64,000 bases of DNA from Octopus sinensis (lineage: Eukaryota). Location of the stretch: assembly GCF_006345805.1 (NCBI RefSeq), contig NC_042997.1:73346001-73410000 (forward strand), given 5' to 3'. Made by a program: the position numbers and the translations under genes. Every line of letters starts with the position of its first letter. The stretch's first letter is position 1. The notes below the pieces were generated by a model. That model was not told where the DNA came from. It ran no database searches and was given only the letters and a program-made list of their open reading frames with translations. Of the stretch, positions 18,645-62,380 are shown piece by piece.

Positions 18645-20247
18645 TCGCTTTTTTTTTGGTGTCGGAATTTTTTATTGCGTTATTGGTGTGTCGAGGTTGT
18701 GAGTTCGAGTTCGTTGGTGGAGGCCGTTGAGGCGTGGTGAATGTTTTTGGAGATGTTTCGAAAATGCAAGCCCAGACGTATGCGGAAGCAGCAGACAGAG
18801 GCTTGACTGCGAGTGATTTAGAGCTGGAAGAAGTGGTAGTCGAGAAAGAGACATTGGAAAAATATTTCGACGGCTTGAAGTAGGAAGATGATTGTGTGAG
18901 AGTCACACCGTCTGAAGAAGAAGCAAAAGAAGCGGAGAAACGTATGATAACATACAGAACGTGGAGCGTGGCTTCAAAGAAAATAGAAGTGGCAGAGACG
19001 GAGGAAATAGAGAAATGTCTGCAAACGAGGAAGAAAATACGCTACAGTGGTCGTCCATTTTAAAAATGAAGATGAAGCAAGAAGGAATGTCACGAAAATT
19101 CTGAAATCTGAAAGATGGACATTATTACCAAGTTACTGCGGAAAGAGTGCAGTAAGAATAAGAATCGGTAGGATTTCGCCGGAGCTTAACATGGAAAGGA
19201 TTCTAGCGGCAGTGGTTTTCAACTGCAAGGAAAGCATTGAGGTGTTGAAGGTGGAAAGGTCAACAGAAGTAAAGTGGTGGGGTTATGCGGTGCAGGCATT
19301 GGTCCACATTACTATGCCAGACCTCTATAACATCCCGGAGGAGTTGGTGTTCCCCGACGAGACACGTCTTAGAGTCGTGGTGGAGGAGAGACCCCCAGTG
19401 TGTTACAAATGCAAAATAAGAGGCCACATGAAGGATGTGTGTCCGCTGGGAGAAGTGCAGGAGAAAACGATAGCACTGGAGGCTTTAACGAAGGAGTGGA
19501 AAGATACGTGTGTAGAGGAGGAAATCATCACTACAGATAATGTGGAAAGTGGTGAAGAGTTGGAGAAAGAAAATAGAAAGAGAACGCGGGTGAAATCACC
19601 ACCCAAAGAACAAAAAGAGGAAGAAAAAGCGAAAAACAAGATTACTGACGAGAGGGAAGACCGAACGTGCGAAGGGAGTGATGCAGAAGCAAAAGCAAGT
19701 GAACCAACAAAATTAACTGGAGAGGAAGAATGGGACAGAAGAATGGAAGAGCAGTTGAAAGGTCTATAAGAGAGGAGGAAGACCCAAAGGAAAGAAACAC
19801 AGAGTGGTAATATTATATTTCAAGGACAAAAATACGGAAAAGATGTTGGCAGGTAGGAAAAGTTTAATTAGAGTAAAGTTGAACCCAGAAATATATGATG
19901 ACCAGTGGAAGGCGGTAATCGTGGAGAGAGAGACATTGGAGAAAATGAGAGATGATTATAGTGTATGTGAATGATTATATGTACGTTATGACACTTTGCC
20001 AGCTATTGTGGATCAGGAGAGGTTGATAGAATACCTGACAGATGAACGACCAGTATAGCAGAACTGTGTTTTAATGAAGCTGCGAGTTATGGGGGGCTCG
20101 TAAGCCGTTCCATCTAATCCATTATAAATATTCATTTCACTTCATATTTTTCAATTTTTTTTATTATATGTACCCCATGTCCTGATTGTGATGTCCCCTC
20201 TTAATTCGGGCCTTAGTGCCTATAATAAAGATAAATCCAATCGAAAA
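18645..20247 (+). mobile_element. ORF1-only Tx1-derived retroelement (HAL1-like), element X
   Basis: ATG at 18764 (MQAQTYAEAA), RGRKYATVVVHF, knuckle CYKCKIRGHMKDVC at 19401-19442, Glu/Lys linker, no APE or RT. 3' UTR with hairpins and AATAAA at 20224. Confidence 0.85.
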
Positions 20248-20415
20248 CCGGTGATTACCGTACGTTGACGAGAGGCAAAAACCTCGAAACTATAGCCTGT
20301 ATGTATCACTTAGGTTTTCGAGAGGGGATGACCTCCCTTTGCGAATATTAGAAGGCACAGAAAATTTGTCTAAAGCCAGCTGGAGACGATGATCTCCTGG
20401 GGCTAAAAGCTTCAG
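20248..20415 (-). pseudogene. Second copy of the unidentified coding fragment seen at 1422-1600
   Basis: Minus peptide LLAPGDHRLQLALDKFSVP versus LVAPGEHLLQLAIDTLSVP. Confidence 0.55.
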
Positions 20416-20799
20416 TAACACCCACCCCCAGTGGCTAGCCACATTGAGATGGCTAGTACACTTTATGTTATCATTGGATATGTTATACAAAATTCATATT
20501 TTATATCTCTAAAGAGCAGAAGCGTTGTCTATAAATGCTTATCGATATAGGATTTCATAATAGGGACAACTCATCTGTGAAACGATCGTAAGATGCTTTA
20601 AATATTTAATTCAAAACTTTTAAACTGTCATATACATTATATATTTATATTTATACATATTTACATATATTTTTTTACATATTTATATTTATTTATTTAT
20701 ATATTCTTAATACAACTATTTTGCCACGTTTATATCTTTCTGAGGAGTTTTGATATTGATTTCCTTTCCTAATGTTAATAATAGTATATTAAAAAATAT

Positions 20800-20828
20800 G
20801 TATGTATATGTATATATATGTTAATATA

Positions 20829-20887
<59 letters not shown>

Positions 20888-21053
20888 TATGTATATTATA
20901 TATATACATATATATGTATATATATATATATATATATATACATACATATATATGTATATATACATATATGTATATATATATATGTGTATATATATATATA
21001 TATATAATATATAATATATATATATATAAATAATATATATATATATATAATAT

Positions 21054-21087
<34 letters not shown>

Positions 21088-21117
21088 ATATATATATATA
21101 TAATATATATATATATA

Positions 21118-21160
<43 letters not shown>

Positions 21161-21182
21161 TATATTATATATATATATATAT
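20800..21182. repeat. Long (TA)n-rich microsatellite
   Basis: Direct reading. Confidence 0.95.
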
Positions 21183-21540
21183 AACGATTTAGGAGTGACC
21201 CCAACAGGTCACTCGTCCACAGAAAGAGCAGCCATAACTCACACCGCCAAGTAATATTAATTCAGAAATTAGGTGAAAATTTAAAAACATTTACCTAAAT
21301 TCATCTTTTAGACGTTGCAACGTTTCTGTGTCATTAATGATTAAATAGCTTAATTAAATTAAATTAAGCCAATCTACCATCATTAATGACACAGAAACGT
21401 TGCAACGTCTAAAAGATGAATTAGGGTAAATGTTTTTAAATTTTCACCTAATTTCTGAATTAATATTACTTGGCGGTGTGAGTTATGGCTGCTCTTTCTG
21501 GTGGACGAGTGACCTGTTGGGGTCACTCCTAAATCGTTAT
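21181..21540. mobile_element. Foldback/MITE, 360 bp palindrome in a TA tract
   Basis: Arms 21181-21341 and 21379-21540 are near-perfect reverse complements. TA on both sides. Confidence 0.85.
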
Positions 21541-21653
21541 ATTTATATATTTAGTCGATGACTATTTTCTCTTTTTCACCAGGCCGCTGGTTGCGATAAA
21601 TTTCTATTGAATTTTTTGCTACCCTAAATTGACTATATATATATATATATATA

Positions 21654-23270
21654 CAGTTGCGGTCAAAATGTTCAGAACGGCATTGTTTTTGTCAGAAAAG
21701 TAGGTATAAGTTTTTATTAAAGTTGTCTCTTCAGAGACAATAAATACAATATTAATTGGTATTGTCTGAGATTTTGGTGTAATTTGAGTGGATAATACAA
21801 AAGTTATGGATGATATAGTGATTTACTGCAAAAACTATGGTGGCCAAAATGATCAGAACGATTGAAAAAATAACAAAATAATCAAAAAGTGACGGAGAAT
21901 GCTGGAATTATTTCATATTTAGTGTGAAGCCCTTTAGCTTCAATCAAAGTTTGATATTTTCGACTGCATGGGGAAATGAAATTTTCATTTTCTTGCTGGG
22001 TGACCTTATTCCATTCTTCCTGAAGGGCATTCCATAATTGCTCGGTTGTTTTAGGATTTCTGGCTTTCAAACGTTCTCCTAGAATATTCCACACATTTTC
22101 AATAGGATTGAGGTCTGGGCTTTGAGCAGGCCAATCCATAACAATAACCTTTTCAGCCTTGAGGAAGTTCATGACCACCTTAGCCTTGTGACATGGGGCA
22201 TTGTCCTGCATGAATATAGGTGGTCGCTTAGTTGAATTTCTCAGCACAGGCAAAACGTGATCTTTTACATGTTGTTTATAAACTCCTGCATTTACCTTTC
22301 CATGTAATCGCAGCAAAGGGCCCACAGCATCTCCAGATATCATCCCCCAAACCATGACACTTCCTCCACCGAATTTAAATCTAGTCTTAAGGCATTTAGG
22401 TGACAATATTTTACCTGCTTTTCGACGAACGTACCTTTTCCCATCTGAGCCAAATAACATAGACTTAGATTCATCACTGAAATGCACCGTTTGCAATTTT
22501 TCTTGAGACCACAACACATGTCCGGTTGCAAAGGTAAGACGACACTTTTTATTCTTGGAGCTGATCAGTGGCTTCACTGCAGGTGCTCTTGCTTGTAGGT
22601 CATGTTCAACTAAAGGACAAGACACAGTTTTTCGAGATACAGTTTTCTTCAGTACAATGCTCATTTCCCAAAAAACAGCAGCAGCAGTTTTAAATCTGTC
22701 CTTTTTAACCAACTTTACCATAGCACGATCTTCTCTCTTGGTCGTTTTTCTTGGCCTACCTGTAGACTTTCTTGCTTCACACGAACCACAATCATCGTAG
22801 ACCTTAAGAATACCGTGAACAACACTTTTTGACTTGTTAACAATCTTTGCAATAGACCTAATACTTAAATTATCCTTCTTTCGAAGCTTAATAATCTGTT
22901 GACGAATTGGTAACGGAGTAAGTGGCATTATATTAACAAAGTACACTGCAAATATTCTTACTAATGTTTAGTAAACGAACTGTCACGTAAACAAATTCAA
23001 AACATTAGAGTTCGACGGTTAAATATACTAAAACATGGAGTAAAAGCAACCGTTCTGATCATTTTGGCCGCCATGGGTTTTGCAGTAAATCACTAAATCA
23101 TCCATAACTTTTGTATTATCCTCTCAAATTACACCAAAATCTCAGTCAATAACACATAATATCGTATTTATTGTCTGTGAAAATGATAGAATATAAAACA
23201 GCTTTGATAAAAACTTATACCTACTTTTCTGACGAAAACAATGCCGTTCTGAACATTTTGGCCGCAACTG
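21654..23270 (-). mobile_element. Tc1-family DNA transposon with IR/DR-type long TIRs
   Basis: Begins CAGTTGCGG and ends CCGCAACTG, with TA on both sides. TIRs ~21654-21860 and ~23051-23270 each carry outer and inner copies of CAAAATG(T/A)TCAGAACG. Confidence 0.97.
21882..22928 (-). CDS. Tc1 transposase (DD34E), 348 aa open frame
   Basis: N-terminal HTH and GRPRK motif. FSDESK, MQDNAPCH and WPAQSPDLNPIENVW, with 34 residues between the second D and E. ATG at 22928. Some non-consensus residues suggest decay. Confidence 0.9.
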   Translation of the reverse strand: MPLTPLPIRQQIIKLRKKDNLSIRSIAKIVNKSKSVVHGILKVYDDCGSCEARKSTGRPRKTTKREDRAMVKLVKKDRFKTAAAVFWEMSIVLKKTVSRKTVSCPLVEHDLQARAPAVKPLISSKNKKCRLTFATGHVLWSQEKLQTVHFSDESKSMLFGSDGKRYVRRKAGKILSPKCLKTRFKFGGGSVMVWGMISGDAVGPLLRLHGKVNAGVYKQHVKDHVLPVLRNSTKRPPIFMQDNAPCHKAKVVMNFLKAEKVIVMDWPAQSPDLNPIENVWNILGERLKARNPKTTEQLWNALQEEWNKVTQQENENFISPCSRKYQTLIEAKGLHTKYEIIPAFSVTF

Positions 23271-23658
23271 TATATATATTTATATATATATATATATGAT
23301 CTGTGTGTAATTACCATAACAAATAACAGGGAGAATGTAATGTATTCCGAAAATCTATCGCCCAAAGTACAGTGCATTGATTTTTACTTATTAGAAAGAA
23401 GAGTGATGGAAGTTGTAAGTCAATCGTAATCGTGAGAGCACATGAAGCACATGAATCACAGAGATCGATGACGACATTTAATTTTAAAGCTTATTGTTTT
23501 TATCTTCGCTGCGAGAAGTGTGACGAATATAATCATATCATAAGACAAGTCAAGTGGACATAATTGATTGAACTTCTCACTTTTGTCACAAAATCATTAT
23601 GACATTAGAGAATTAAAAAAAAGTTTGTGCTCAGTGAAAAATGTTGCCATAGTTTGTG

Positions 23659-23985
23659 GCAACAAAAGCAGCCTAGCATTCAAGAGATCATCGTGTTGCA
23701 TCATCTGAAACCACCTTTCTGCTAGTTCTTTGATCCCACACAGATACTAGTTCTTGTCCTTCGAGATGAGCTTCCCTGCTGAAGCTTCCACCTCCTTTTA
23801 GTTGATGAAGAGTGGCGGGTGCAGGAAGTGAGCTATATTTTCAAGAGGAGAGCTTCTGTGAAGGAGTTCTTTGCCTCGAAGGACAAGAACTGGTGTCAGT
23901 GTGGGATCAAAGAACTGGCAGAATGGTGGCTTCAGATGGTACAACACGATGGCCTCTACTTTGAATGCTTGGATGCTTTTGTTGC
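23659..23985. mobile_element. Mariner-derived foldback remnant
   Basis: The plus strand of the right arm encodes EFFASKDKNWCQCGIKELAEWWLQMVQHDGLYFE (mariner C-terminus). The left arm is its diverged reverse complement. Confidence 0.75.
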
Positions 23986-24165
23986 AGCTTGACGAATAAA
24001 GCAAACAAGTTCCCAAAATATTGCAAAATTCTTGACTCAACACAGTAACCCTGATTTCTATGAAATACTGTAGTGCATTCCACTATATTGACATTTTTGT
24101 TATATATTTTGTGGAGTACGGAAGGTTGAAGGACAACGTCAACACAACGTTATTTGTTGTAACGA

Positions 24166-24238
24166 GCCGAAATAGCTCAGTTGGGAGAGCGTTAGACTGA
24201 AGATCTAAAGGTCCCTGGTTCAATCCCGGGTTTCGGCA
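24166..24238 (+). tRNA. trnF-GAA: tRNA-Phe (GAA)
   Basis: GCCGAAATAGCTCAGTTGGGAGAGCGTTAGACTGAAGATCTAAAGGTCCCTGGTTCAATCCCGGGTTTCGGCA. Full cloverleaf, anticodon at 24199-24201, canonical metazoan sequence. Confidence 0.98.
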
Positions 24239-24254
24239 TCCAGTGGTTGGACTA

Positions 24255-24259
24255 TTTTT
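24255..24259 (+). terminator. RNA polymerase III oligo-T terminator
   Basis: T5 run beginning 17 nt downstream of the tRNA. Confidence 0.8.
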
Positions 24260-25200: not shown

Positions 25201-25243
25201 CGTCAGTCGTAACAGATATATGACCATGACAGTGGCAACAAAA

Positions 25244-25410: not shown

Positions 25411-25414
25411 CAAA

Positions 25415-28400
25415 CACACCCTTTAGCCTGGTAAGGCAGATTATATAGAGATGGAATCTCAATAAAAATACTCGTAGGAAGGAAAATTCCAGAAATCACT
25501 CTCAAGGAATCACGAAAAAAAAAACAATAATGAAATAGTTAACGGCGTGAAGGAAGCTGGAACCAGTTACGGCGAAGGTCTCACGCCCGGTATGGAAGTG
25601 ATTGGTTACGGATGATCTTTACAAAGCAACAGATCACATACAAAACCTGCGTGCAGCTAGACACAAGTGGACGAGTACGCTATACTCATACTCATTGAAT
25701 GTCATGAAAGAACAAAACTAGAAGGCAGTAGTGGAGGAGGACGACGTACATAATTTCAATGTCAGAAAATAAATTAATGAATCAAGTGAGCGTGATTAGG
25801 CCGAAGAATTAGTTAACTGAGGCAGAAATATTTCAGATTACTGAACGTTTAAGGGAAGCTGCAGGTGAGCAACAAAGGTTGATTAGAGTAGAAACTGAAG
25901 CTAAAGAATGTGAAGTTAAAGGCAGAGAGTAAAATAGACAACAGGAACACGGGAATTATAATAGGACTATTAAGGCTGCTGAGGAGAACTGTTACAAATT
26001 GAACTTTGTTACTGATGAGTTTGATTACAGAGAACAAGGACAATTATAGATTATTCACTTCAATTACAAAGAGGAGTAAATGAATGCTCCTGAAGAAAAT
26101 ATCCCGATAAGTATGTGAAGGGTTCATAGGGGCATGATGTATGTAATTGTCAAAAAGATAAATGCTGTTATATCACATATCCAGACAGCGGACATAACGC
26201 AACAAGGACGACGGCGGAGGCGGTGGCGGCGACAGTGGTGGCAGCGACGGCCACGGCGACGACGACAACGATAACGACGACGGTGACAACCATGACGACG
26301 AGGGTGACGACCATGACGACGAGGGTGACGACGACGACGATTACAAAACGCTTTTGACCTCATACCGCGTTCATGGATCCTGAAATCGCCGTTCATCTTC
26401 AAAATTTCATCCGTAATTACAAATTTTCTGAAGCAAAATATGTTATAGTGGAACACGAATCTCCAATTATATCACTCTAATGGAGTACTAGCTTCAAACA
26501 ATATTAGCATCAATTGGGGAATTTTCCAAGGTGATTGACTTTCGCCTTTAACATTTTTTCATAGCTTTAGTACCTCTTAGATGTGAATTTAACAGAACAG
26601 GGTATGGCCATAAGATTGAAAAAAAAAAAGCCTTAAAACTCTACGGCACAAAAAGTGATGAGTTTGAAGACTTGTTACATACTGTAAAAGCATTCAGTGA
26701 TAACATCGGAATGGAATTAGGTCTTGATAATTGTGCCAAGGCCACTTTCGAGAAAGGGAAATTGATAACACCAAATTCAGTCGTATTAAGTATTGAAACA
26801 GATACAAGAACTTGAGCAAGAACAAACCTATAAATACCTAGGTATAAAAGAAGGCCCTGACATTCAGCGAACGATTAGGAAGGAATGCTATAGAATATGA
26901 GTTCTGAAAACTAAGCTAAATGCATATAACAAGGCATTCGCCATAAATTCCTTAGTTGTTCCAGTTGTTACTTAAAGCTTCAATGTGTTGAATTGGAATA
27001 TCCGTAAAAGAAAATCGACGGAAAAAATCATAAGTTGCTGATTTGTAATAAAATATACGCCAAAAGACAGACGTGGATCTGATTTTACTTTCCCAGAGCT
27101 CTAGGATCTAGAAGCTTAATCTACAATTGGTCTGGCCACATATCTTGAAACACCTAAGACTGGATGTTAAAACTCGTTGAAAAGCACGGGAGGCGTAAGA
27201 AGCTTTATTCTATCTTGGAAGAGAGGAAATAATTTTCTATTGATTTCATGCTGAATATCCTGAAGGAAATGTGGCAGTTGTTGCTGCAAAGAAAGTAACA
27301 TAAATGGCAAAGGCAGTAAAATTAATTGGCTGGTAGGTTGGAGCAGAAATCTCTGCATGGAAAATATGTGACCCGTTGCAAGCATGCATATGTTGACCAG
27401 AAGCATCTTCATCAAAGGCTACGAAGCATGGGCTCAAGGTAAATAGAAAAGGTTTCATGTTAGCTGCTCAATATCAAAACTTCTTGACCCGGAACTACCA
27501 AGTCAACGTGATGAAAAATTGAATAGATCTAGAGTGCCGGTTCTGCAATGAGGAAATTGAAACAATGGAGCACCTAATCTTTGAATGTAAATTTTAATCG
27601 GTAGTAAAGTGTAAATCAAAACATGACACTGTTTGATATGCCAGCATCATAAAATCAAAATTGGTGACAAGTAGTATAAGCATGACTTTGAGACTGTAGC
27701 TGAGGGAGAAAATGGGATCTTTTCTAAAAGATGGACAGAATTTTCTACTTAACTAAATAATTTGAAACTTCGTATACTCTTAGAATGTGTCTGTTTTGAC
27801 CTCAATTCATTTTTTTCTGCCGTGTTATTCGTCCTTATCCATGTCTTCTGTCTTCAAAAGCTTCTCGCATGTTTATTTCAATGTCATCCCTGACTTACGG
27901 AACGATTACTTGTGTGTGTGTGTTTTTGTTGTGTATGTGTGTGCGTGTGTGTGTTTGTTGTGTGTGTGTTATTGTTGTGTATGTGTGTGTGTGTGTGTTT
28001 GTTGTGTGTGTGTGTTTGTTGTGTGTGTGTGTTATTGTCGTGTATGTGTGTGTGTGTGTTTGTTGTGTGTGTGTTATTGTTGTGTATGTGTGTGTGTGTT
28101 TGTTGTGTGTGTGTGTTATTGTTGTGTATGTGTGTGTGTATTTTTGTTGTGTATGTGTGCGTATGTGTGTGTCTTTTTGTTGTGTATGTGTGCGTGTGTT
28201 GTGTATCTCTTAAATCGAGGAATTTCGTCGCCCAATAAAAATATTAACGATATTTTTTGAAATTTGATATCATTAATATTTTTATTGGGCGACGAAATTC
28301 ATCGATTTAAGAGATACACAACACAGGCACACATGCACAACAAAAAAAAAACACACACACACACACACACATACACAACAAAAAGACACACACACATACG

Positions 28401-29250
28401 CACACATACACAACAAAAACACACACACACATACACGACAATAATACACACACATACACGACAATAACACACACACACACAACAAACACACACACACACA
28501 CACAACAATAACACACACACACAACAAACACACACACGCACACACATACACAACAAAAACACACACACACAGGTAATCGTTCCGTAAGTCAGGGATGACA
28601 TTGGAATAAACATGCGAGAAGTTTTTGAAGACAGAAGACAGAAGACATGGATAAAGACGAATAACTCGGCAGAAAAAATGAATTGAGGTCAAAACAGAGA
28701 ATACGATTGGTTAAAATTCGAAGAATTAAACTACCTAAAAGTTACAAAATACATTTTTCTCAAAAAAACTTTTTGAAATTAATGTTTTCTTTTGACACAT
28801 TCTAACAGTATACGAAGTTTCAAATTATTTAGTTAAATAGAAAATTCTGTCCATCTTTTAGAAAAGATCCAGAAAATGTAACGAGTCTTTGGGACATTCC
28901 GGCACATACAGACAGTACCATCAACGCGAATACGCCGGTTATTGTGGCAAAAGACCAAAATAATATCTGTTTATTGATTGACAGGAGTATCCAATGTGGT
29001 CATTATATTTCGGCAAAAGAATTTGACAAGCTCAGCAACTATAAAGATTTTGCTCGTTGAAGAAATCAAGTATTGAGAAGAGCATTGTCGCTATGCGAAC
29101 GACTTCCACTGTGTAAATGATATTTTTTGCATAACTTTATTTGATTTGGTAAATGAACAACCTGGGGTGTTTATTTACATGGCCTACCAACGTATACAGT
29201 GAGATTCTCTTCCCTACGTGTCACGAAAACACTCGGGAATAAAAGGAACC
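25415..29250 (+). mobile_element. Decayed R4/Dong-type LINE, family A copy 1, interrupted by a foldback transposon
   Basis: 26340-27714 and 28879-29250 align to 35625-37620 (RT, CCHC, endonuclease, 3' UTR). Upstream part poorly conserved. (TAA)n tract at the 5' flank. Confidence 0.75.
27715..28870. mobile_element. 1156 bp foldback DNA transposon with 8 bp TSD (Merlin- or MULE-like)
   Basis: Termini GGATCTTTTCTAAAAGATGG / CCATCTTTTAGAAAAGATCC. TSD AGAAAATG at 27707-27714 and 28871-28878. Almost the whole element is an inverted repeat. Confidence 0.92.
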
Positions 29251-29254
29251 AATA

Positions 29255-29980
29255 TTGTTGGAGGCCAATACACCGCAAGGCTTGACAGAGAAGTGAGCCT
29301 AAGTAAAAGCCAACAATGGATCAAATGCTCTGGACTAAAAGCTGAAAAGAAGGACTGCTTCTCGCTGCACAAGGCCAATGTCTGAATACGAACACGTATA
29401 AAAGCAAAATAATGAAAACAGCACAATGAGACAGTTGACCACATTATCTCTGGCTGCCCAACCTTGCCAAATTTGAATATATATTGAGACATGACCGAGT
29501 AAGTAGTTATATCAACTGGACAATATATCAACACTACAACGTAAAAACTGATTATAGTTGGCATAAACATGTGCCAAACAAGATACAAGACAACGTCCAG
29601 GCCACAATCCTCCAACAAAGAAATCAAAACGATAAAGAAATAAAAACTAATCACCCAGGCGTAATCAAGGATTGAGAAAAAATCACCTGCTTACTGATAG
29701 ACATAATCACTTCTGACCAAAATATTGTTCTAACAGAAGTGGAGAAGTCGTCAAAGTACAACGACCCCGAAACTGAAATATTCAAGATGTGGTTCATGAA
29801 GGTGAAAACAATACCAGTAATAATTGGAGCATTGATCATGACAAAAAACATGAGTAAAAACATAGAAGCTATACCTGGATCCTCAACACTACACAGAATC
29901 CAAAAAAATTAGCCCTACAAAGAGAAGCCCACATCCTACGCAAGACAATATCGATTCACTAATGAAACCTAACAAAACAA
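29255..29980 (+). mobile_element. Decayed R4/Dong-type LINE 3' fragment (family D)
   Basis: QQWIKCSGLKAE, DHIISGCPTLAKFEYILRHDRV and KTIPVIIGAL remnants. Confidence 0.75.
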
Positions 29981-37635: not shown

Positions 37636-37676
37636 AAAAAAAAAAAAATAATAATAATAATGATAATAATAATAAC

Positions 37677-47619: not shown

Positions 47620-47962
47620 ATGGGTAAGGATAAAGACCCCACTTCGGTCATGAATGACCATGGAATTGCACCAGAAAGTTACCCTGCGAGGTACAAATCA
47701 AGGCAAGGTTGTTTATGGAAGACTAGCAGTCGCCCATGTATACGAACCTCCCCTCTCCATGCCATCGATGTTACCCAACGGAAAAGCAAAGACTGATACA
47801 TCTTGGCACCAGTGACGTCGCAACTCATTTCTACAGCTGAGTGAACTGGAGCAACGTGAAATAAATAGTCTTGCTCAAGAACATAACACACAGCCCGGCC
47901 TGGAATCGGATTCTCTACCTCATGATTGTGAACCCGACACTCTAACCATTGAGCCATGCGCC
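47620..47962 (-). mobile_element. tRNA-headed SINE (second family)
   Basis: Minus head GGCGCATGGCTCAATGGTTAGAGTGTCGGG...AATCCGATTCC, followed by a conserved-domain-like TTGCTCCAGTTCACTCAGCTGTAGAAATG. Confidence 0.7.
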
Positions 47963-49620: not shown

Positions 49621-49624
49621 TGGT

Positions 49625-51322
49625 AGCTTGATTCTTTATTACAGGCACAAGGCCTAAATGCAGAAGGGACATACAAAGAGATGCGGGAACAAATATCACA
49701 TAAAGATGAATATATAATGAATAAAATACAATGCAAATGAGACGGCTATCTCGCTCCCGCTGCGAGATGAAACCGCAACTTCCCTTTTCGCTTTTGCCCA
49801 ACAATTACACACCTTTCAAACAAATGTTCATACAGGATTTACTTCTTATTTTTCCTTTTTTTTTACCTAAAGCCAACCTAATGTATATCACAAAATTTTT
49901 TTTAACCATTTTGAAAACCTGTTCATTCAACAATTTCAAAATTTGGTAGTTTTCCTTTTTTTTTTCCTTAACAGTTCAAATAAATATTTTCTCAGTTACA
50001 GTCTTTACAAAATATATATCGACTTACCTCTTCTGTCTCTCACAATGTATTTCACTTATTCAAACTTTTACGTTGGAGTGTCTTATCTCACTATAATTTT
50101 CCTTTTTCATTTTGTCTCTTTTTGTTCCTATTTTCCTGCTGTCTTGCATGTTCTTGCATTTTCGTCTCTAAGTCTGTGTGTTCGTGTATTTGTGTGTCTG
50201 TGTGTTCATTTGACTGCAACTCTACGTGTTTCGTCTGTATGTGTATGTTTTTAGGTTTCTGTAATTCTGGGTTGCTTTGTTTCTGGTCTGAATGATTCTG
50301 TACTTATAATTCCTTTGCTGGTACTTCCACTGGTAAATTTTCTCCGTTTCTCGTCGTGGTTTGGGTTTCTTCCTCCATTCCTTTAATCTCCTTCAAGTCC
50401 ACTGTCGTCGGTGACTTTATTCTCTGTCATTTCCTGGGTTGTACCTCCGCAAAATTCCCATTACATTCTATTTTTTGTTTCTGCTTTTTTTCCACCACTA
50501 TATCTTCCTGAGCATTCTATTCCACCATTTCCTCTGTTGCTCTAGGGCATTTCCTTCTCAGGTACCCTCTTTCACCACATCGGTAACATTTTGGGGCTAG
50601 TTTTTCACCGTTTGGTAATTCCAATGTTTCCGCCATTTCGTCGTAATATTTTCGGCTTACCGCACAGATTATTTTCATACCATAACCTCAACAATTCAAT
50701 TTTTGTGATCTACTTTCTATGCCAATCCTCAGGTCTTCATTCTTCCTCAGCTCTGAATTAAACGTTGCAGCTATTACCCATCCTGGGTCTATCGACCCTG
50801 ATTCTGACGATTCTTTTGCCCCAACAGTTCGGCATCAACGTCCATTTTACTCCCGTCAACATCATATTGCCTGATTTTTTCGCCTCCTCTTCTGAAAGAA
50901 AGGTTACTACTATAATTCCGTATCTTCTTCCTCTTGTAAAAAACGTTATCTTTTCTCCCGTGTTCACCACCAACATTTCCTCTATCTCTTCTGGCGGCGC
51001 GTGTTCGATTCTCCCAATTTTCATTTGAAAATGTTCTGAATGTTACCGTCTTGCTTTCCATTTTTCTTTTTTCCTCCTCTGGCAGGGTATTTTTATGTTT
51101 GACCCTACTTTCTTTTGATTCTCACAATATTTAATTATCTTCTTTTCATTCCACTCCATCTTCTCCAGCTTCAGCACACTTGGGTCTATAGCATCTCGAC
51201 CCCGGTAGCTTCCGCGTAACTCTTTATTTTTTTTTTATGTTTCCCAACCACCCAACAATGACGGCTTCGCAAAATCATTTGGCTAGACTCATTCCAAAAA
51301 ATAACAACAAAAGTGGCTGTCG
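49625..51322 (-). mobile_element. ORF1-only Tx1-derived element Z1, head-to-tail with Z2
   Basis: SYAEATG, RGRRYGIIVVTF, degenerate knuckle CYRCGERGYLRRKC at 50547-50588. 3' UTR with hairpins and AATAAA (49635-49640, minus). 5' end AGCCACTTTT shared with Z2. Confidence 0.83.
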
Positions 51323-52814: not shown

Positions 52815-52847
<33 letters not shown>

Positions 52848-52848
<1 letters not shown>

Positions 52849-53340: not shown

Positions 53341-53349
53341 AAAAGTAAA

Positions 53350-53530: not shown

Positions 53531-55213
53531 GCGTTTTTTTGCGCTCTGTAAAATTCGGTTAAAAAAGAAAAACAACAAAAAGTGAATTGTGGTTGCGGAA
53601 TTGGAACGTCGGTTGGTGCGGTTTCGCGTCGCACTGGTTCTGTGCGTCGCACGTTTTCTGTTCGGGAGGCCGTTTTTCGGTCGGAGGCGACTATGAGCCG
53701 CCTCTACCAAACGGATGAGATGTAAGGGAGAAATTTCTCTGAAAATTCGTCGACATCTGAGGAGGAGTTGGCGGTGAAAAAAATGGAAAGCACCTATGCA
53801 GGTATAACGAAGAAGTCAACAGAAAAAGAGTTAGACCTGGCTAAGTTGACGGACTTCCAGGAGTTCATGAAGGAGGAGGAGAACGGAGAGGTTGAGCTGT
53901 TGCCTCTAGCAGGGCGCGGAGACTGGTTCCATCGTAGAACCATTAAATATAAAGTATTTATGAATGGAGGTAGAAAAATGGAAGTGATTAACATGGAAGC
54001 AATTGAAGAGGCTTTCAAACGGACAGGAGAAGAAATTGTGTACATGGCAAAAGGATTAGAATATGGAACCATAACGGTACAATTTAAAAGTGAGAAAGCA
54101 GCCAGGAATATAGCAGCCAAGGTGGTGAGTACACAAAAGTTTTACTTGTTCCCCTCGTATTTGAATAGAAGGCCCACCAGAATTAGGGTGGAAGGAATAC
54201 CTCCACACCTAGAGGGCGAATTAATAACGGCTGCGGTTATCAAAGGAAATGAAGATAAAGTGGACATCCTCCACGCCATTATGAAATATGAAGGCGTGAG
54301 TGGTGCCACACTAGTAATGAACATACAGACGGAGGCGGAAGTTATAGAAAAGCTTACGGACAGTATAAAAACTGGAATATTATTATGAGAGTGTGGGTGG
54401 AGGGTAGGGCGCCCAGGTGCTACAAGTGTGGCATGAGGGGTCACATAAGAGCCTACTGCCCTCCACCACTAAAGGAAAAAGAAAAGGAAATCGTCGCGGA
54501 AGCCCCAAAAGAGGAAGAAACCAAAGAGAACCAAAGGGAAAAAGAAACGACAGAAGAAGAGGAGATGCAACAAGAGTGGGAAGAAGAAGAAAAAAGAGAA
54601 AAAGAAAGAAAAAGAAAAACTGTGCGAAGCCCCAACCCACCCCAACACCACCCGCACCCTCTGAATCCCACCCTTCCCCTGCAGACAGTGAACCCACCCG
54701 CTCCCCTCCAACAAGAAAACAAAAGAAAAATAACAATACAGACAGACAAGAGTTTGAAAACGAACCCAGGCCGAACATTTATATTGTGACTGAACAGAAA
54801 GAGGTTGAAAGGGTAATGGAGGAGTATGAATGGTATGAAATGGATGGGACCAGATATGCAGTGCTGGAAAAGAAGAATATAGATGAGTTTGTGTTGAGGT
54901 GTGAAAGGGAGAATTGGGAGGTGAAAGATACAAGAATGAGCGATGAATTCGTGGAATATATGGAGGACAGTTTCGGAGTAAGAATGGATATGGATGGTCT
55001 TCGTATTGGGAATGAACATTCAGGTGACAGTGAAAACAAAAGGACAGGTAAGTGATGCTGGCGGAGGGGGCCGTTAGCATCGCTTTCATATTATCCTTTT
55101 TTCATTTTCATTTGCTCATAAATTTTATCATATTGTTCTATGTCCCCCATGTTTTGTTATGTCCGCCATTCTTCGTAGCCCCTGGTGGGTAATAAAGAAA
55201 TAACATGGAGGAA
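53531..55213 (+). mobile_element. ORF1-only Tx1-derived element Y1
   Basis: MESTYAGIT, GLEYGTITVQF, knuckle CYKCGMRGHIRAYC at 54418-54459, stop at 55055. No APE or RT. AATAAA at 55191, then AACATGGAGGAAA. Confidence 0.87.
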
Positions 55214-57140
55214 ATCTATCCACATGTGTTGAGTTATTTTGTATGCGAAAATTGGAAAAAAACTGTTAAAAATTGTCAAAAAGTTGAGTCGCGCGAGGCG
55301 TTTGCCGCTGCGTGTTTGAACCTTTTATAGAAGGTGTGTCGACCCTCAAGTCATGGAGACTTACGCGGGGGTCGCCACAACAAAAAGTGACGAGTCTCTT
55401 AGAATAAAAGAAGTGTTCTTTAGAAAAGAACAATTGAAGGAATACGAGAAGTTCGTCAAAAGGGAGGGTGACAGCGTGAAGCTGGTCCCGCCTGTGGAAA
55501 CAATAGAAGAGAAAAATAACAAGACGATAACGTATAGAACGCAAGATAGAAACACGAGAAAACTGGTGAGAGTGACGATTGAAGAAATAGAGAAATGTCT
55601 GGGGGACATCATGAAAAAAGCGACTTTTGTAGACAGAGGAAAGAAATATGGTACGGTGGAGGTGAGATGCGCAACAAAGGAAGTGGCCGCCTCATTGGCT
55701 TCCACTGTCCTGAAAGCGGAAAATTTCACCATGTGGCCGACGTATAAAGGAAGACGAGGGGTACGGGTAAGAGTCCCAAAGGTGCCCCCAGATATTAAAA
55801 CAGAAATGCTGGTAACAGCCATTATTGGGGCAGCAAAAGAGGAAGTAGAAATAGGGTCAATTAAGGAGACGAACGTTGTAAATTGGAAGGGATTCGGAGT
55901 AGAGTTGTGGCTGATGGCCACAATGGAAGACATCGAAAGATTTCCTTCCAAATAGAAATAGAAAACGAGAAAACAATTAGTGTAATAGTGGAAGGCAGAA
56001 AACCGAATTGCTACCTGTGCGGATCAAGAGGGCACATAAAAAAGGAATGTCCGATGTATGAATTCACAGCGGAGCAAAAAGAGACACAAAGTGGAGAGAA
56101 GGAAAACGAACACGAAGGAAAGAACAGCGAAAACAAGGAAAAGGAAATAACGGAGAAACAACAAGAGAAGGGAAGTAACAACGCACTGAAGGAAAATGAA
56201 AACAAAGGGAAGAAGATAGTAGAAAAGGAGCAAAATTCACAGGGTGCAGAAGTAGTGGAGAAGGAGCCAAGGCAGAAGCAAGAGAAAGAAAAGGAAAGTA
56301 CATTAAAGGAAAGAGAAAAAGCAGGAAAAGAACAAGAGAAGGAACAGAACCAAGAGAAAGGAAAAGATGGTATGCAAAAAGGAAAAGAAACAACAGGAAA
56401 GGAACTTAAGGCACAGGGTAGAGAGACGGCAGACAAAGAGCCAAAAAGACAAGAGAAGGAAAAAGAAAGAAGAGAAAGCAAAAAGAGAGAAAGAGAGAAA
56501 CCGAGGGAGGAGAAAGAAGAGGAAGTAAGTCCTAAGAGAAAAACTAGAGAAAACGTAGGTACGAATAGAAAATTCAAATACTATGGAACGTTGATCCATC
56601 ACAGGCACTGTGAGGAGATGGAAGATTTAATAAACGTAACAAACGGATATACGTGGGTCAGGATGGGCACCGAATGGAAAGAAACAGGTGCACTCGTCCA
56701 CGAGAACGACGCCGAGGCGTTCATCGAGGCAGCTGGCAAGAACGTGTCAAAACATATGAAATGCCGACTTACAAGGTGGCCTCGAACGATGGAAGTTACT
56801 CAGATTTGGTAGACATAATGGAGTATATATAAAAGAAAAGGTATTGTGAAAACTTTAATTTGGAAATGATAAAAAGAACTTTAAATTCTGAAAAAAAAAA
56901 AAAGAAATGTTGAACTTTGTAAAACTTTTGAAATGTATGTTGAAAATGTATAAAATGTTTTATTTGGAAAATATTGTTGACGAATAAAAAACAAATGACG
57001 AAATGTAACCGCTCGATTTCGGGGATCGAGTGGGCATTACACCACATTGTACAAACTTCATAATTCATTATTCATTTTCCCGATTGTATTGTCCCATCTA
57101 TGTAGCCCCTCGTGGGTAATAATAAAACAACATGGAGGAA
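55214..57140 (+). mobile_element. ORF1-only Tx1-derived element Y2
   Basis: ATG at 55353 (METYAGVAT), RGKKYGTVEVRC, knuckle CYLCGSRGHIKKEC at 56009-56050, long E/K linker, stop at 56812, one frameshift near 55950. AATAAA at 57121, then ACAACATGGAGGAAA. Confidence 0.88.
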
Positions 57141-60100
57141 ATCAATTTTTTGCGTTATTAGTAAGTTGATATATTTTTGCTCTCGTACTATTATCTCTGT
57201 TATTATATACTGTTGGTCTACCTGTTTTGTCTATTGTCGTCTAACTGACGAAGTAAGCCTTCGCGCGAAGACTTCGCGTTGGTGTTCCCCCCTCCGTGGG
57301 GGAAAACTACAATTAATTTGGATTTACCAAAGGCTTGTTAAAGCCATTTGTTCAAGATGGAGTCCCCCATCTCTTATTCGCCCGTGACGAGAGAGGATGA
57401 ATACCCGGCGTTGTCGCCAAGAAAAAAAGAGGCGTTGTCGCCAAGAAAAAAAGAGGCGTTGTCGCCGAAGAAAAAAGAGGCGGCGTCGCCCAAGAAAATG
57501 GAAAAACCAGTACCAGCATCAACTCCACCAAAAAAATTCGCTGAAGTGGCTGGGAAAAAGATCAAAAAAATAAATATAGAAAATTTTTTGAAAATTTGCA
57601 GACTGTGTAAAAAAAGAAGGCACAGAAGTGACTGTGGCCACAAACATACAAAAACATGACGATATAGAAAAAAAAAAGAATAATATATAAAACTTACGAC
57701 ACAACGAAAAAAATGATCCAAAAAATCGAAGAAAAAAAAATAGAGTTTTGTCTAAAACCTTTTATGGATAAAATAACGTATATAAACAGAGGAAAAAGAT
57801 ACGGCACAGTGGAGGTGCGTTTTACTACGGAGGAGATAGCGAAGAAACTATCGATGGAGCCGATCAAAGCGGAAAACATTGTCTTCCTTATAAAGGAAAA
57901 AGGACGTCGAAAATTTCAATGAACAACATACCGCCAGAGGCAGATGCTGAATGTCTGGTGGCAGCAGTGATGGTAGGTCTGGAGGAAAAAATAAACATCC
58001 TCCAGGCCACAGTGGAGGAAGAGGAGTTTTGGAAAGGGCAGAAAATAGTGATAGCCATTCAGGCGGAGGTGCAAACACTGGAAGAAATTCCAGAAACGGT
58101 AAAGATTAGTGAAGACGAGAAAATAACAGTTTTCGTGGAGGGCAGGAAGCCGAGGTGCTTCGGCTGCGGCAAGAAGGGTCATGTAAGGGCGGAATGCCAA
58201 CCCCAACCCAAACCGCAGGAAGCACCTAAGCCAAAAGAAAAAGAAGATAATGTGTCACCAGAAGCAGCGTCGGACGGCCCAGAAGGGAAGACTGAAGGTG
58301 TGGAGGTGACGGTGACAGCAGAACCAGCGGCGGAGGAAAAAAAGAGCGAGGAAAAGATAAATGAGGAGGGGTGGGCAAAAATGACCGGAAAAAAAAAGAA
58401 AAACGGAAACCACCCCACCCAGAGTAATTTTAAAAAAGAAAAAAGAGTCAATGAACTCGTATATGGCCGTAAAGGCAGCAAATAGCAGACTCGGAAACGT
58501 GTTGGCAGCCATGGCCAAAGTGGAGAAAGTAGTGAAAAAAAACGACTTTGTAATTTACAGAATAGGCCGGAAGGATTACGGGCGGATAAAGTCAGAATTC
58601 TTCCATGACGTAGGCCCACTTAGATTGGATGTGACATCTCCACATATATTCGAGGGCCTACGTCAGACTCCCCAACGAGGCCCAGAAAAAGAGTTAGAAG
58701 AACAAGAGAAAACCGAACCACTGATATAAGGTAAGTAATGGATTACATTTATGTTAGTTGTTTGAATGTGCGCGGCCTGGGAGCAGGCTGGAAGCAAGGT
58801 CGCTTCCTGCATGATATCAGGTCGCGTAATTTAGATGTTATTGTTGCTACAGAAACCCGGTTAGAGGGGCCAAGAGGTCTACTCCCGCTGTTTGACGGCT
58901 ACGAGAGTTTTTTCTCTCCTGGCAGTCCTACAGGCGGGAGTGGGGAGTTGGTCCTATTAAAAAGAAACCGGGTTTCTGAGAAAAAGTTAATTTTTGCAGA
59001 TCCAGAAGGTAGGCTGGTCGTCATGGATTTGACGTTCAGTAATGGTAAAGTTATCAGACTGGTTGCAATTTACGCACCCAACCATACAGGGCAAAGTGAT
59101 TATTTTCGTGAACTAGAAAACTTTCTTGGTACTTCGCATTCATTAGTGGTGCTAGGAGACTTTAACACAATTTGCAAAGCGGATGTAGATTGTGTTGGCT
59201 CGCGTCCAGATAGAAAAGGCAACAGTGGCTTCATGGAACTGCTAAGCCGCTTTGAGCTAGCAGATCCTTATAGGCTGGAATTTCCGAACGCTCCATTGTG
59301 GACATGGTCAAACAGCGACGGATCTTCCAGGTCATATTTAGATAGAATACTAATTAGAAAAGTAGACAGTAAAATAGCTAAGTGTCCACAGTTTTACCCG
59401 ATCAGCTACAGTGATCATAAAATGGTCACTTGTAAGCTTGACATAGATAAGGTTAAAAATAGAGGATCCGGTTACTGGAAACTTAATACGTCCCTTTTGG
59501 CGATTAAGGAGTACAAAGACCGGATTAGGAATATAATTCAGAGGGCACTATCTGGTACCATCATTAATAACAAATGGTGGTACGCCCTCAAACGAGCCAT
59601 CAAGTTTGAGTCTATTAGATATAGCATAGGAGTAGTGGCTAGAGAGGCTAGAAGGGAAACTACTCTAGTTAAGGAATTAGAGGAAGCCATGAAAACTGGC
59701 TCTGCGGCTCAGGTGGCGTCCAAGAGACTGGTGTTAAACCAGCACCTCGAGGCCAAACACATGGGCTGCATTGTCAGGGCTAGAATCCGCCATATGGGAT
59801 GTGAAGGAATCAACGCCGTGAGATGGGCCCGAGTGGTGGAAGCTCAGCATGGTAACGATGCCACGATTCGATCTTTGACGAACCAACAAGGTGAGTTGAT
59901 AAACGAACCCGAGGAGATGTGTGAGGCCTTTCAGGAGCACTTCGCTCAGCTTTTCGGTGAGTGCGGCGGACTGGATAGGAGGAGGGCCTTTACGGACCTA
60001 CTCGACGGGCTGCCGCGCTTATCGGGGCGAGATGCGGAGGGCTGTGAAGGGCCAATCACGCCTCAGGAGGTGGTTGAGGCAATGGCGGACTGCGGCGCGG

Positions 60101-62380
60101 GCAAGGCGCCGGGTCTGGATGGTCTACCCTATGAGTTATATAAGAGTATGCCAGACTTGTTCGGGCACCTACTGGCGGAGGTCTATGCGAACTGGCAGCA
60201 GAACGGGCTTATACCCAGATCTGTGCGCCGGGGAGTAGTGACTCTCGTCAGAAAGGACCCGAGCAAGGGGGAGTGCATTGATAATTTCAGGCCCATCACT
60301 CTGCTAAACACAGAGTTGAAGATTTTGGCCAAAGTGTTATCGAAAAGATTGGCGCGTGTCGCGGATGGTCTGATCGGAGAGGCACAGACATGTGCCGTTC
60401 CGGGCAGATCCATTCAGGATAATCTCCATCTAATGCGGTACACTATAGAGGGGTTTAATAGTGATTCTGGCAAGGGTGGGGCACTGGTCCATTTAGACCA
60501 ATCTAAAGCTTTTGATAGGGTCGACCATCGTTACCTGGTATCTGCCCTGGCACAGTTCGGGCTGAGCCTTGGCTTCCTCAGGTGGATTATCCAAATTTAT
60601 GATAACATCGACTCGGTAGTTCGGGTGAACGGCTTCTTGTCGAAGCCGTTCAAAATCAAACGCTCGGTCCGTCAAGGGTGTCCGCTCTCCCCGCTTTTGT
60701 ACGTGATGGCTCTTGAGCCATTACTGCGAAAACTGAGCGGCATCCCGAGACAGCCAGGTAATGGAAAATCAGTGTCAGCGTACGCGGATGACATCACCAT
60801 CATCGTAACCGAAATGTACCACCTATGTAAAGTAGGCAAGGCCATAGAGGTTTACGAGACGGTGACAGGAGCAAAAGTTAATCGCGAAAAGTCAGTCGGC
60901 TTGCAACTCGGCACCTGGAGAGGCAAGTCGATGCCTCCTGACAGCGTCGTGGGACGTTGGACGGAGGGTCCGATTAAACTGCTAGGGGTCTGGTTCGGTC
61001 CAGACCTCCAAATAGAGAAGAATTGGGGCGAGGTAACGAGCAAGGTGGCTGCAGTAGCCAAGACCTGGTCTTGGCGGTGGCTATCCCTGAAAGGAGGGCG
61101 GAGGTGGCCAATGTGTTTATCGCATCGGTTATCACCTACCGCCTTTCCGTCGTTCCTTGCCCTGATTCGTGGTTGATCAAGTTGGAAAGACAGCTCTTCT
61201 ACTTCTTGTGGAAGGGCGGGAAACCACTTGTGAAACGCTCTACTTGCTGTCAACAACCGTTAAAGGGTGGGCTAGGGATGCCTTGGCTGATGATGCGCAG
61301 ACATGCGCTGAGGTTAAGACATCTGTGGCTCTACCTGGATGGTGAACGGGTGTGGTCTTCGCTAGCAAAACTGATGTTTCCCAAGTTCACTAGTTTCGGT
61401 GGATGGGAAACCTGGCTGAATCGTAGATCGAAACTTGGTACTTGGTACACGGAGTGTCGCAAGGCTCTCCTGCTATTCCGTCGCTCGGGCAACGCCTGCG
61501 GTGGGGGTTCCACCACATTCTTCTATAGAGGGTTGGTAGAGGCGGAATGTGAAGATACCTTGGGGGAAACCCTAGGTCTCGACGATAATCAGCTGGCCAG
61601 TCTGTTCCGACGTACGTTCGAGCCGAGGACACTGGACAACTTCCAGAAGTCTCTGGCATGGCAATGCTACAGAGGAGCTCTACCTGTTCGGGATAAACTC
61701 GCAAGGCACGGTGGCCAAGACAGTCCGATATGTCCAAGATGCGGGCGGGATAGGGAAACCGTCCCGCACGCTATTGTTCATTGTCCGGACGTGTCTGAGG
61801 TGTGGGTTTATGCCGAACACCTGTTGTCAGGTACACGAAGAGTACAGCTGTCGACTGAGTCGATTACAAAAATTGACCCACCGGATTTCCTCGTGAATGA
61901 AGGTAAGTTTCGTTTTCTCGTTGTAGTAGCAATTGCGAAAGAGGTGATATGGAAGACGAGAATGAAAGGTTTACAGTCAGGCAAGTTCATCTCCGGCCCT
62001 GGTTTGATGAAGTATTTCATCTTTCACCTGAAAAGGAAGATAGGGCTGGAGAGAATATGCCTGACTAGGAGAGTGTATGAAGAACGATGGAAGGATGTAG
62101 CACGAAAGTTGCGAGTGAAAGATACAACATAAATGTAATACCAAGCGCAACCAAAAGTATCAGTGGGGAGGCGGGGCTCGTGGGGTCCGAGCTAAACCCG
62201 CACCCACTCCACCCGTAATGTCTTCCGGTCTGTCCCATCATTCGATTTCTGTCCATTTATTGTAATTCATGAAAATTTTTAAATCCGATTTATTGTAAAA
62301 ACCCATTCGTTTGTCTGACCCCATCATCAGATTGTATTGTCCCATCTATGTTCGCCCCTTGTGGGTAATAATAAAACAAC
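57141..62380 (+). mobile_element. Full-length Tx1-clade LINE Y3 (ORF1 + ORF2 + 3' UTR)
   Basis: ORF1 ~57357-58729 (frameshifts at A runs; knuckle CFGCGKKGHVRAEC at 58156-58197), ORF2 58738-62132, AATAAA at 62370. Confidence 0.95.
58738..62132 (+). pseudogene. Tx1 ORF2 (APE-RT-CCHC), intact except for one 1-bp deletion near 61090
   Basis: CLNVRGL, ATETR, GDFN, SYLDRIL, YSDHKMV, LDQSKAFDRVDH, RQGCPLSP, YADDI (60781-60795) and CPRCGRDRETVPHAIVHC (61731-61784). CTGAAAGGAGGG here versus TTGAAAGGGAGGG in T2 marks the missing G. Confidence 0.93.

Follow-up and report, generated by a model that had tools for sequence, protein, structure and literature searches.

Can the G-rich loop of a hairpin in a 3' untranslated region (UTR) base-pair with a C-rich box further downstream, and if so, what would such a pairing do for the retrotransposon that carries it? 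This question is raised by a stretch of 64,000 nucleotides (nt) of the Octopus sinensis genome (contig NC_042997.1, positions 73,346,001 to 73,410,000 of the forward strand), referred to below as the window, for which an initial annotation had described a co-varying pseudoknot shared by four elements carrying only the first open reading frame (ORF1) and by one autonomous element, Y3. Seven elements in the window have one common 3' tail architecture: el1, W, X, Y1, Y2, Y3 and Z1. Judged by their domains, these are retrotransposons of the L1 superfamily that lack long terminal repeats (non-LTR) and have a Tx1-like domain set, together with ORF1-only derivatives. Five of them, X, Y1, Y2, Y3 and Z1, carry both a G-loop hairpin and a C box, and the complementarity between the two exceeds chance when the elements are considered jointly. 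We infer that the two strands pair in the RNA in vivo and that this pairing has a function; on balance, we lean slightly towards the long-range pairing being real.

Reading the window sequence directly, we found all five hairpins and C-rich tracts at the positions first reported. In X (plus strand), the stop-proximal hairpin consists of a 5' arm GCGAG (20082-20086), the loop TTATGGGGGG (20087-20096) and a 3' arm CTCGT (20097-20101); its local fold, at -10.3 kcal/mol (z -2.5), leaves AUGGGG in the loop, and this ATGGGG forms 6 Watson-Crick pairs with the box CCCCAT (20173-20178; duplex free energy -8.5 kcal/mol). Z1, on the minus strand, has the arms ATCTCGC (49768-49762) and GCGAGAT (49754-49748) around the loop AGCGGGA (49761-49755; local fold -9.6 kcal/mol), of which GCGGGA likewise makes 6 Watson-Crick pairs, with TCCCGC (49688-49683). 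The remaining three are on the plus strand. The 11-bp hairpin of Y1 (arms 55054-55064 and 55071-55081, loop AGGGGG at 55065-55070; -23.2 kcal/mol, z -6.3) holds the TGA stop codon of the ORF inside its 5' arm, and its box CCCCC (55144-55148, in the context CCCCCAT) matches through G5:C5 only, without pairing of the flanks. In Y2, the arms CCGCTCGAT (57009-57017) and ATCGAGTGG (57025-57033) enclose the loop TTCGGGG (57018-57024; -15.1 kcal/mol), and TCGGGG pairs with TCCCGA (57078-57083) through 5 Watson-Crick pairs and one G.U. Finally, the Y3 hairpin (GCTCG 62176-62180, loop TGGGGTC 62181-62187, CGAGC 62188-62192), which is flanked by an outer helix GCGGG...CCCGC, commits its whole 7-nt loop to 7 Watson-Crick pairs with GACCCCA (62317-62323; duplex -12.0 kcal/mol). 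Taken together, the five elements show 5-7 contiguous Watson-Crick pairs between loop and box (duplexes of -8.3 to -12.0 kcal/mol), local hairpin folds of -9.6 to -23.2 kcal/mol, and an AU-rich linker that sets the paired strands 50-130 nt apart. The G run lies in the loop in X, Z1 and Y1, mostly so in Y3, and is partly engaged in wobble pairs in Y2. It had been stated that the stem sequences differ completely, which is too strong, as a CTCG...CGAG core is common to Z1, Y2 and Y3 and occurs in flipped form in X.

How independent are these five elements? X (18651-20252), Y1, Y2 and Z1 contain ORF1-like frames without ORF2 and keep the family 3' tail, so that the label of ORF1-only elements fits, with the reservation that these frames are broken across several reading frames. 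Y3 and W (about 14300-18650, plus strand) have long ORFs with Pfam matches to Exo_endo_phos, RVT_1 and zf-RVT, marking W as an ORF2-bearing element with the apurinic/apyrimidinic endonuclease (APE), reverse transcriptase (RT) and zf-RVT domains; the C-terminal part of the Y3 ORF2 has its best protein matches among uncharacterized proteins of O. sinensis and Argonauta hians. Y3 is the sole ORF2-bearing copy in the window with a G-loop/C-box UTR, and to call it autonomous describes its architecture and not an intact copy: its ORF2 is split in two frames by a frameshift after "...LSLKG" near 61100 (about 61023-61176), and its ORF1 is in at least three pieces (57348-58729). Among X, Y1, Y2, Y3 and Z1, the ORF1 proteins reach only 25-45% identity, with no detectable match between Y2 and Z1, and by this measure the five carriers of the G loop and C box represent deep lineages.

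Further copies of the module come from relatives outside the window, whose loci were obtained by exact-protein look-ups. One of them, L001 of O. sinensis, is a decayed Y3-like element with the same GACCCCA box and a loop, GTAGGGTTG, that matches it with one mismatch. A second lineage, mostly 57-59% identical to Y3 in protein sequence, comprises the Argonauta locus L002, two copies in L006 (L006a and L006b) and the contigs L005 and L007-L009; L005 and L007 end before the C box, and the contigs of P0010 before the 3' UTR. The 3' UTR of this lineage starts with a covarying hairpin (GGGCA/TGCCC versus TAACAC/GTGTTA), and next comes a G run (consensus GTGGGGTT) able to sit in the loop of a second hairpin with varying stems (GGGGA/TCCCC, GGAAA/TTTCC, GGGAAA/TTTCCC, CCAGG/CCTTGG, GAATGATGCA/TGTATCATTC and GTGTA/TGCAC). 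An AU-rich linker, a GTAAACCCCCAY box, the common tail and (ATT)n or (ATCT)n follow. Loop and box match over 10 bp in L002 (8 Watson-Crick and two further pairs), 7 in L008 and 6 in L009. The arrangement of a G run and a "CCCCAY" box recurs in most of the relatives checked, from Argonauta and from metagenomes, and the module thus appears to be conserved across octopods, neither universally nor always with pairing of the flanks. In L003 and L004, with ORF2 proteins 39-41% identical, the 3' UTRs are long, C-rich and not alignable to the module. A search with the ORF1 protein returned no homologues, and therefore no further ORF1-only elements were collected.

Could the complementarity simply be what chance provides once G-rich and C-rich tracts have been picked out by eye? 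For individual elements, this is a serious objection. In a free search that accepted every hairpin with 5 bp or more and a loop of 4-12 nt, together with any complement further downstream, dinucleotide shuffles of each UTR equalled the observed match in 7-45% of cases (P 0.07-0.45), and the Fisher combination of these values is about 0.1. Since no single case goes beyond chance, the argument depends on whether loop and box co-vary. The data set is small as well, and the windows compared were chosen after the sequences had been seen. Nonetheless, we regard chance and ascertainment, with pairing under no constraint at all, as an improbable account: the cognate, flank-randomization and pair-count tests described below speak against it, as does the fact that the module is kept among Octopus, Argonauta and metagenome relatives with UTRs that cannot otherwise be aligned.

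In the cognate test, the longest Watson-Crick helix was determined for each G-strand window against every C-box window, and the true pairing was compared with permutations. With the five window elements alone, 2 of 120 permutations were as good as the true pairing, and with ten elements including relatives, P=0.0013 (P=0.0097 with G.U pairs allowed), the diagonal summing to 58 against a mean of 4.77 per off-diagonal cell. Randomizing the flanks of the tract with the C run kept gave a summed Watson-Crick helix of 46.8 ± 2.7, as compared to the observed 58 (P=0.0002), and 65.1 ± 3.9 compared to 79 with G.U allowed (P=0.0024). Furthermore, when 11 elements were aligned without gaps, with the G and C runs as anchors, 71.1% of cells were paired versus 61.8 ± 2.7 in shuffles (0/500), with a covariation score of 0.301 versus 0.161 (0/500 shuffles); on three measures in all, none of the 500 shuffles reached the observed value, and controls in which the strands were slid against each other were all lower (41-55% paired, score at most 0.18).

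At the level of individual pairs, five elements have U-A next to the invariant GGG:CCC core, where two others, Y2 and Z1, have C-G, and the second pair out from the core is G-C in three, U-A in two, A-U in one and G.U in two. Within the window this yields two variants, GGGG/CCCC in X, Y1 and Y3, and CGGG/CCCG in Y2 and Z1. Given the divergence of the ORF1 proteins, and the lack of any match between those of Y2 and Z1, the CGGG/CCCG state of these two is not due to recent shared descent. In addition, the terminal 60 nt of Y2 and Y3 are 95% identical, yet loop and box both differ between them, and do so in a matching way.

These changes also bear on another explanation, namely that the G loop and the C box are each conserved for reasons of their own and remain unpaired. 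The loop would then be bound by a protein, the CCHC zinc knuckle of the ORF1 protein being one candidate, CCCCAY would be a mere part of the tail, and the complementarity would follow from a G run meeting a C run, helped by post hoc selection. There is a precedent in retroviruses, whose nucleocapsid knuckles bind packaging stem-loops at G-rich loops; the ORF1-like frames of X and Y2 have a zf-CCHC Pfam match, those of Y1 and Y3 contain CX2CX4HX4C motifs, and the hairpin lies at, or at most 40 nt from, the stop codon in X, Y1 and Y3. The near-identity of CCCCAT in X, Y1, Y3, L002 and L006 moreover means that the match is largely one between conserved sequences. What a protein site fails to predict is co-variation in the run flanks above the level of shuffles and slid controls, and matching changes on both strands in Y2 and Z1, which are of unrelated lineages. 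Neither the G-loop hairpin nor the C-run box occurs in W and el1, which retain the terminal hairpin; that the two motifs are missing together counts for the pairing, and it agrees with their being lost or kept jointly, neither of them being essential. We think it doubtful, albeit possible, that the two motifs are conserved independently.

A number of observations nevertheless weigh against long-range pairing, beyond the single-element results given above. When only the five relatives outside the window are tested, the cognate pairs have no advantage (58/120 permutations). In the run-anchored alignment, the stricter measures are less decisive: 8 of 11 pairs change on both sides (13/500 shuffles), and for further pair types the figure is 53/500. 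Cognate and non-cognate energies of whole UTRs, calculated with RNAduplex, differ with P=0.064, in a noisy statistic for which L006 was mis-cut and which allows large internal loops. The sample amounts to 10-11 sequences, some of them related (L008/L009, Y3/L001, L006a/b), a caveat that extends to the shuffle control, and anchoring on the G and C runs leans the alignment towards structure. In Y1 and both L006 copies, pairing is confined to the two runs (GGGG/CCCC in L006), as a protein-binding loop would also allow. The L001 helix contains a mismatch, though this copy looks decayed; a C run close by offers the G run an alternative partner in several Argonauta-type relatives; and the more distant L094 has a long hairpin and a CCCCAT box, its loop being devoid of a G run. 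As for function, the window copies offer no evidence, all of them being decayed. The proposal that loop-tract pairing has been kept by compensatory change consequently stands in part: the joint tests go beyond chance and the flanks co-vary, on the basis of few, run-anchored sequences and with the outside relatives null by themselves.

If the two strands do pair, which topology would result? In addition to a stable hairpin and an available loop with a complementary strand downstream, X, Z1, Y1 and Y2 share a regular loop geometry, with 1-3 nt on the 5' side of the paired segment and 0-2 nt on its 3' side, which would suit an H-type pseudoknot whose third loop is very long. In that case, the hairpin would persist, with a first loop (L1) of 1-3 nt, a second stem (S2) of 5-7 bp and a very long L3. 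Folding with ViennaRNA considers nested structures only, pseudoknots being outside its model, and it is blind to the hypothesis; its prediction of the long-range helix in Z1 (P=0.93), L001 (P=0.84) and L002 (P=0.99) is therefore independent. In Z1 and L001, this helix is formed at the expense of the hairpin, whose arm it would invade to give an alternative, nested fold. Both strands are left mostly unpaired by the same model in Y1, Y2, Y3 and L009.

It follows that the pairing might be real without there being a pseudoknot, a reading that overlaps with the one we favor: hairpin and helix would be mutually exclusive conformers, or the helix would close a large nested domain. By minimum free energy and partition function calculations, the G strand of Z1, L001 and L002 belongs to a nested long-range helix, with the hairpin remodelled in the first two, and with G.U pairs the Z1 helix reaches 11 bp, running into the 3' arm of the hairpin. 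Y3 pairs all 7 loop nucleotides, leaving none to span the groove, and a loop with no unpaired nucleotide to do so strains H-type geometry. Conversely, the hairpins of Y1, Y2 and L006a are very stable (about -23 kcal/mol for Y1) and leave the G run in the loop, and the regular geometry of the four window elements is more in line with a persisting hairpin. We consider exclusive conformers or a nested domain rather unlikely. The pseudoknot of the initial annotation retains its hairpin, its available loop and its complementary strand, and has against it the nested fold predicted in Z1, L001 and L002.

Directly 5' of AATAAA, all seven elements of the family in the window (7/7) carry a second, short structure that is much better supported than the long-range pairing. 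From 5' to 3', the tail is made up of a C-run box, which is optional, a TGTCCC box, a spacer resembling CTATGT, a 4-bp hairpin whose loop is of the CTTGT type, and AATAAA. On the plus strand, the el1 tail (1379-1415; 3' end of the element near 1418) has the stem GATC/GATC followed by AATAAA and is without the C-run box, and the W tail (18589-18626) has GATC (18607-18610) and GATC (18615-18618), with AATAAA at 18621-18626. In X (20192-20229) and, on the minus strand, Z1 (49635-49671), a TGTCCC box is followed by GGGC (20208-20211) and GCCT (20218-20221), with AATAAA at 20224-20229, and by AGGC (49655-49652) and GCCT (49646-49643), with AATAAA at 49640-49635, respectively. The stem is GCCC/GGGT in Y1 (tail 55160-55196; 55178-55181 and 55187-55190, AATAAA 55191-55196), Y2 (57090-57126; 57105-57108 and 57114-57117, AATAAA 57121-57126) and Y3 (62338-62375; 62354-62357 and 62363-62366, AATAAA 62370-62375), all on the plus strand, and GGCC/GGCT or GGCC in L001 and L009. 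Among the window elements, the stem varies by complete compensatory exchanges. Counted outward from the loop, el1 and W have T-A/A-T as their second and third pairs, X and Z1 have G-C/G-C, Y1-Y3 have C-G/C-G, and L001 and L009 have C-G/G-C.

A separation of the two parts of the UTR is provided by short repeats at the Argonauta hians locus L002. More than 10 repeats resembling short interspersed nuclear elements (SINEs), of at least two types, end there in CTTCTGTGTTCGGCCCTTGTGGCTAATAGAGAAA and share the terminal ~40 nt of the long interspersed nuclear element (LINE); they include the positions 161-203, 4560-4719, 4900-5355, 11826-11857, 12125-12159, 12816-12847, 15193-15229 and 16150-16224 of that locus. 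The first type is a ~155-nt unit, present as a tandem triple at 4900-5355, with tRNA-like box A/B motifs; ARAGORN made no tRNA call on the heads of the SINE-like repeats. It shares only the last ~40 nt, with neither the G-loop hairpin nor the CCCCAY box. In the second type, a G run and a TTTCCCTGTCC box flank a short hairpin, which by eye looks like a miniature nested version of the loop-box pairing. No such tail-sharing SINE partners were seen in the window itself. As the first type has the tail and nothing else of the module, the terminal hairpin, and not the pseudoknot, would be the minimal element recognized by the RT, and it is likely also the primary one. This runs counter to the idea that the pseudoknot serves as the main signal for ORF2 recognition or priming, which is unlikely given that SINE-like type 1, W and el1 keep the terminal hairpin and have neither of the two motifs.

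So what would the long-range pairing contribute? The 3' UTR of the five elements, which belong to a cephalopod group, is modular, starting with a stable, stop-adjacent hairpin with a G run in its loop, followed by 50-130 nt of AU-rich linker and a "CCC(C/G)AY" box, and then by the TGTCCC box, the 4-bp terminal hairpin with its CTTGT-type loop, and AATAAA. In the arrangement that we propose, the G-rich loop would base-pair with the CCCCAY box over 5-10 bp, at about -8 to -15 kcal/mol, folding the AU-rich linker out and bringing the stop-codon end of the UTR beside the tail hairpin. Rather than being the priming signal itself, this pairing may be an accessory fold that acts in compaction of the ribonucleoprotein (RNP), in RNA stability or in cis-preference. 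One could also imagine that it occurs in trans, the loop of an ORF1-only RNA kissing the CCCCAY box of an autonomous RNA, or the reverse, such that ORF1-only elements would ride on the RNP of their partner and the variant pairs would form compatibility groups of parasite and host elements. When all loops and boxes are set against each other, X, Y1 and Y3 cross-pair at 4-7 bp, and Z1 and Y2 pair with the others at 3-5 bp in either direction, a pattern compatible with such groups; even so, we deem pairing in trans highly improbable.

Several other roles for these sequences were considered and rejected. A search of all 3' UTRs against Rfam gave no family match at the gathering threshold or at E<=1, neither to a ribozyme, which had been raised as a matter of self-cleavage, nor to another known RNA family. 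A stimulator of readthrough or frameshifting was dismissed as no ORF lies downstream of the hairpin, and a G-quadruplex as there is a single G run only. Pairing of the loop with the second, TGTCCC box instead of the first yields matches of just 4 bp, shorter than those with the first box.

The same tails lie at the junctions of head-to-tail arrays. In the window, these are W-X (junction 18650/18651), Y1-Y2-Y3 (about 55216/55217 and 57141/57142) and Z1-Z0 (about 49620); outside it, L006 holds two tandem elements (9690-12787 and 13722-18852) and L002 the SINE-like triple. Each member of an array, whether LINE, ORF1-only element or SINE-like unit, begins right after the preceding tail, in the window as well as in Argonauta. 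X begins exactly after the terminal gataaatccaatcgaaaa of W and closes with those 18 nt again, making them a possible target-site duplication, and Y1, Y2 and Y3 all end in acatggaggaaa and adjoin one another directly. Genomic copies terminate at or shortly after AATAAA, or in microsatellites. This layout suggests insertion beside an existing tail or its microsatellite, and thus a preferred target. Downstream of el1 and of the W-X array, the flanks are homologous (1419-1600 versus 20253-20411), with 83% identity over the last 79 nt, ending ...gccagctggaga.gatg.tctcctgg, and represent either a common target or a part of W-type elements beyond AATAAA. No defined target sequence was found among the ends considered for a target or its duplication, which included acatggaggaaa and aatccaatcgaaaa.

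Besides the elements of this family, the window, with a GC content of ~38% and frequent microsatellites, contains two elements, T1 (3' end near 29256) and T2 (3' end near 37650), that belong to a different family with A-rich or (AAT)n ends and had rightly been set apart from the others. Compared to T2, T1 carries an insert of ~1.2 kb (27629-28870) bounded by 77-nt inverted repeats (27715-27791 and 28794-28870, 97% identical), with a long hairpin (28142-28383) that has sub-threshold matches to plant microRNA families; it looks like a miniature inverted-repeat transposable element or a foldback DNA transposon within a LINE. A tRNA gene (24166-24238, 69.8 bits) is the only Rfam match at gathering level in the window. 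Just downstream of the truncated Z0 lies a tRNA-derived SINE-like sequence on the minus strand (47640-47960; ggctcaatggttagagtg...ggttcacaatc), the 3' end of which is without the family tail. In the databases, an ORF2 fragment of the window's LINE family (P0005) has been deposited as a 'zinc-binding domain-containing protein' of a Herbaspirillum metagenome-assembled genome, and JGI and ENA metagenome contigs contain fragments like it; such sequences probably represent host (mollusc) DNA that was placed in metagenome bins. Metagenome scans with patterns of the ORF2 C-terminus returned no relatives, and scans of viral and prokaryotic genome collections with the tail pattern gave chance bacterial matches only.

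The closest known parallel for a pseudoknot in this position is R2, whose protein initiates target-primed reverse transcription by binding a small pseudoknotted element in the 3' UTR; in R2Tg this element is compact, lies within the last 67 nt, and is both necessary and sufficient (PMC12222951). Like R2, the elements described here belong to the non-LTR retrotransposons and have a structured 3' UTR; a pseudoknot near the 3' end is proposed here and shown there, and both insert without reliance on a long poly(A) tail. Unlike R2, which has a restriction-like endonuclease and a single ORF, the window elements have an APE endonuclease, RT and zf-RVT, and a separate ORF1; and unlike in R2Tg, a distance of 50-130 nt separates the strands, neither of which is present in the one SINE-like type that has the tail alone. 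Neither sequence nor Rfam links the two systems, and on the grounds of endonuclease, ORF structure and fold geometry, the window elements stand outside the R2 system.

A different comparison can be made with the stringent-type tails of LINEs, in which, as in UnaL2 and ZfL2, a stem-loop is recognized by the ORF2 protein (PMC4176376), and which within the L1 clade are found in maize/sorghum and Chlamydomonas (PMC3747384). Like these, the terminal hairpin is short, has a stem that covaries and a loop that is conserved, and recurs in SINE-like partners; a further resemblance is that microsatellite repeats follow the tail in the Argonauta relatives. Where those tails are single stem-loops, the window elements add a putative long-range pairing of loop and box. 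To our knowledge, such an additional pairing is undescribed for stringent LINE tails, and full-text literature searches found no description of it for cephalopods or Tx1-like elements, in agreement with what had been supposed, this being weak evidence of absence.

With the Tx1 group of the L1 clade, which consists of target-specific LINEs (PMC3747384), the window elements share an ORF2 with APE, RT and a C-terminal zinc-binding zf-RVT and an ORF1 with a CCHC knuckle, the classification being by domain set; their head-to-tail arrays suggest a preferred target. X, Y1, Y2 and Z1, in turn, keep ORF1 and the family 3' tail without ORF2. This is reminiscent of HAL1 (half-L1), the ORF1-only, non-autonomous L1 derivatives of mammals, with the difference that the octopus elements belong to another L1 lineage and have kept a specific structured tail in place of poly(A).

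Structured 3' ends set which RNAs the RT of a stringent LINE copies, and hence which SINEs and non-autonomous elements spread. Repeats of these types abound in cephalopod genomes. Should the long-range pairing turn out not to be real, a terminal hairpin tail common to octopod LINEs, ORF1-only elements and SINE-like repeats remains well supported. If, on the other hand, the two-part 3' UTR is true, its presence in an L1/Tx1-like lineage would extend the folds by which LINE RNAs are recognized beyond those of R2 and L2-type tails, and it would offer a testable model of the ways in which ORF1-only and SINE-like repeats make shared use of the machinery of autonomous elements or escape it.

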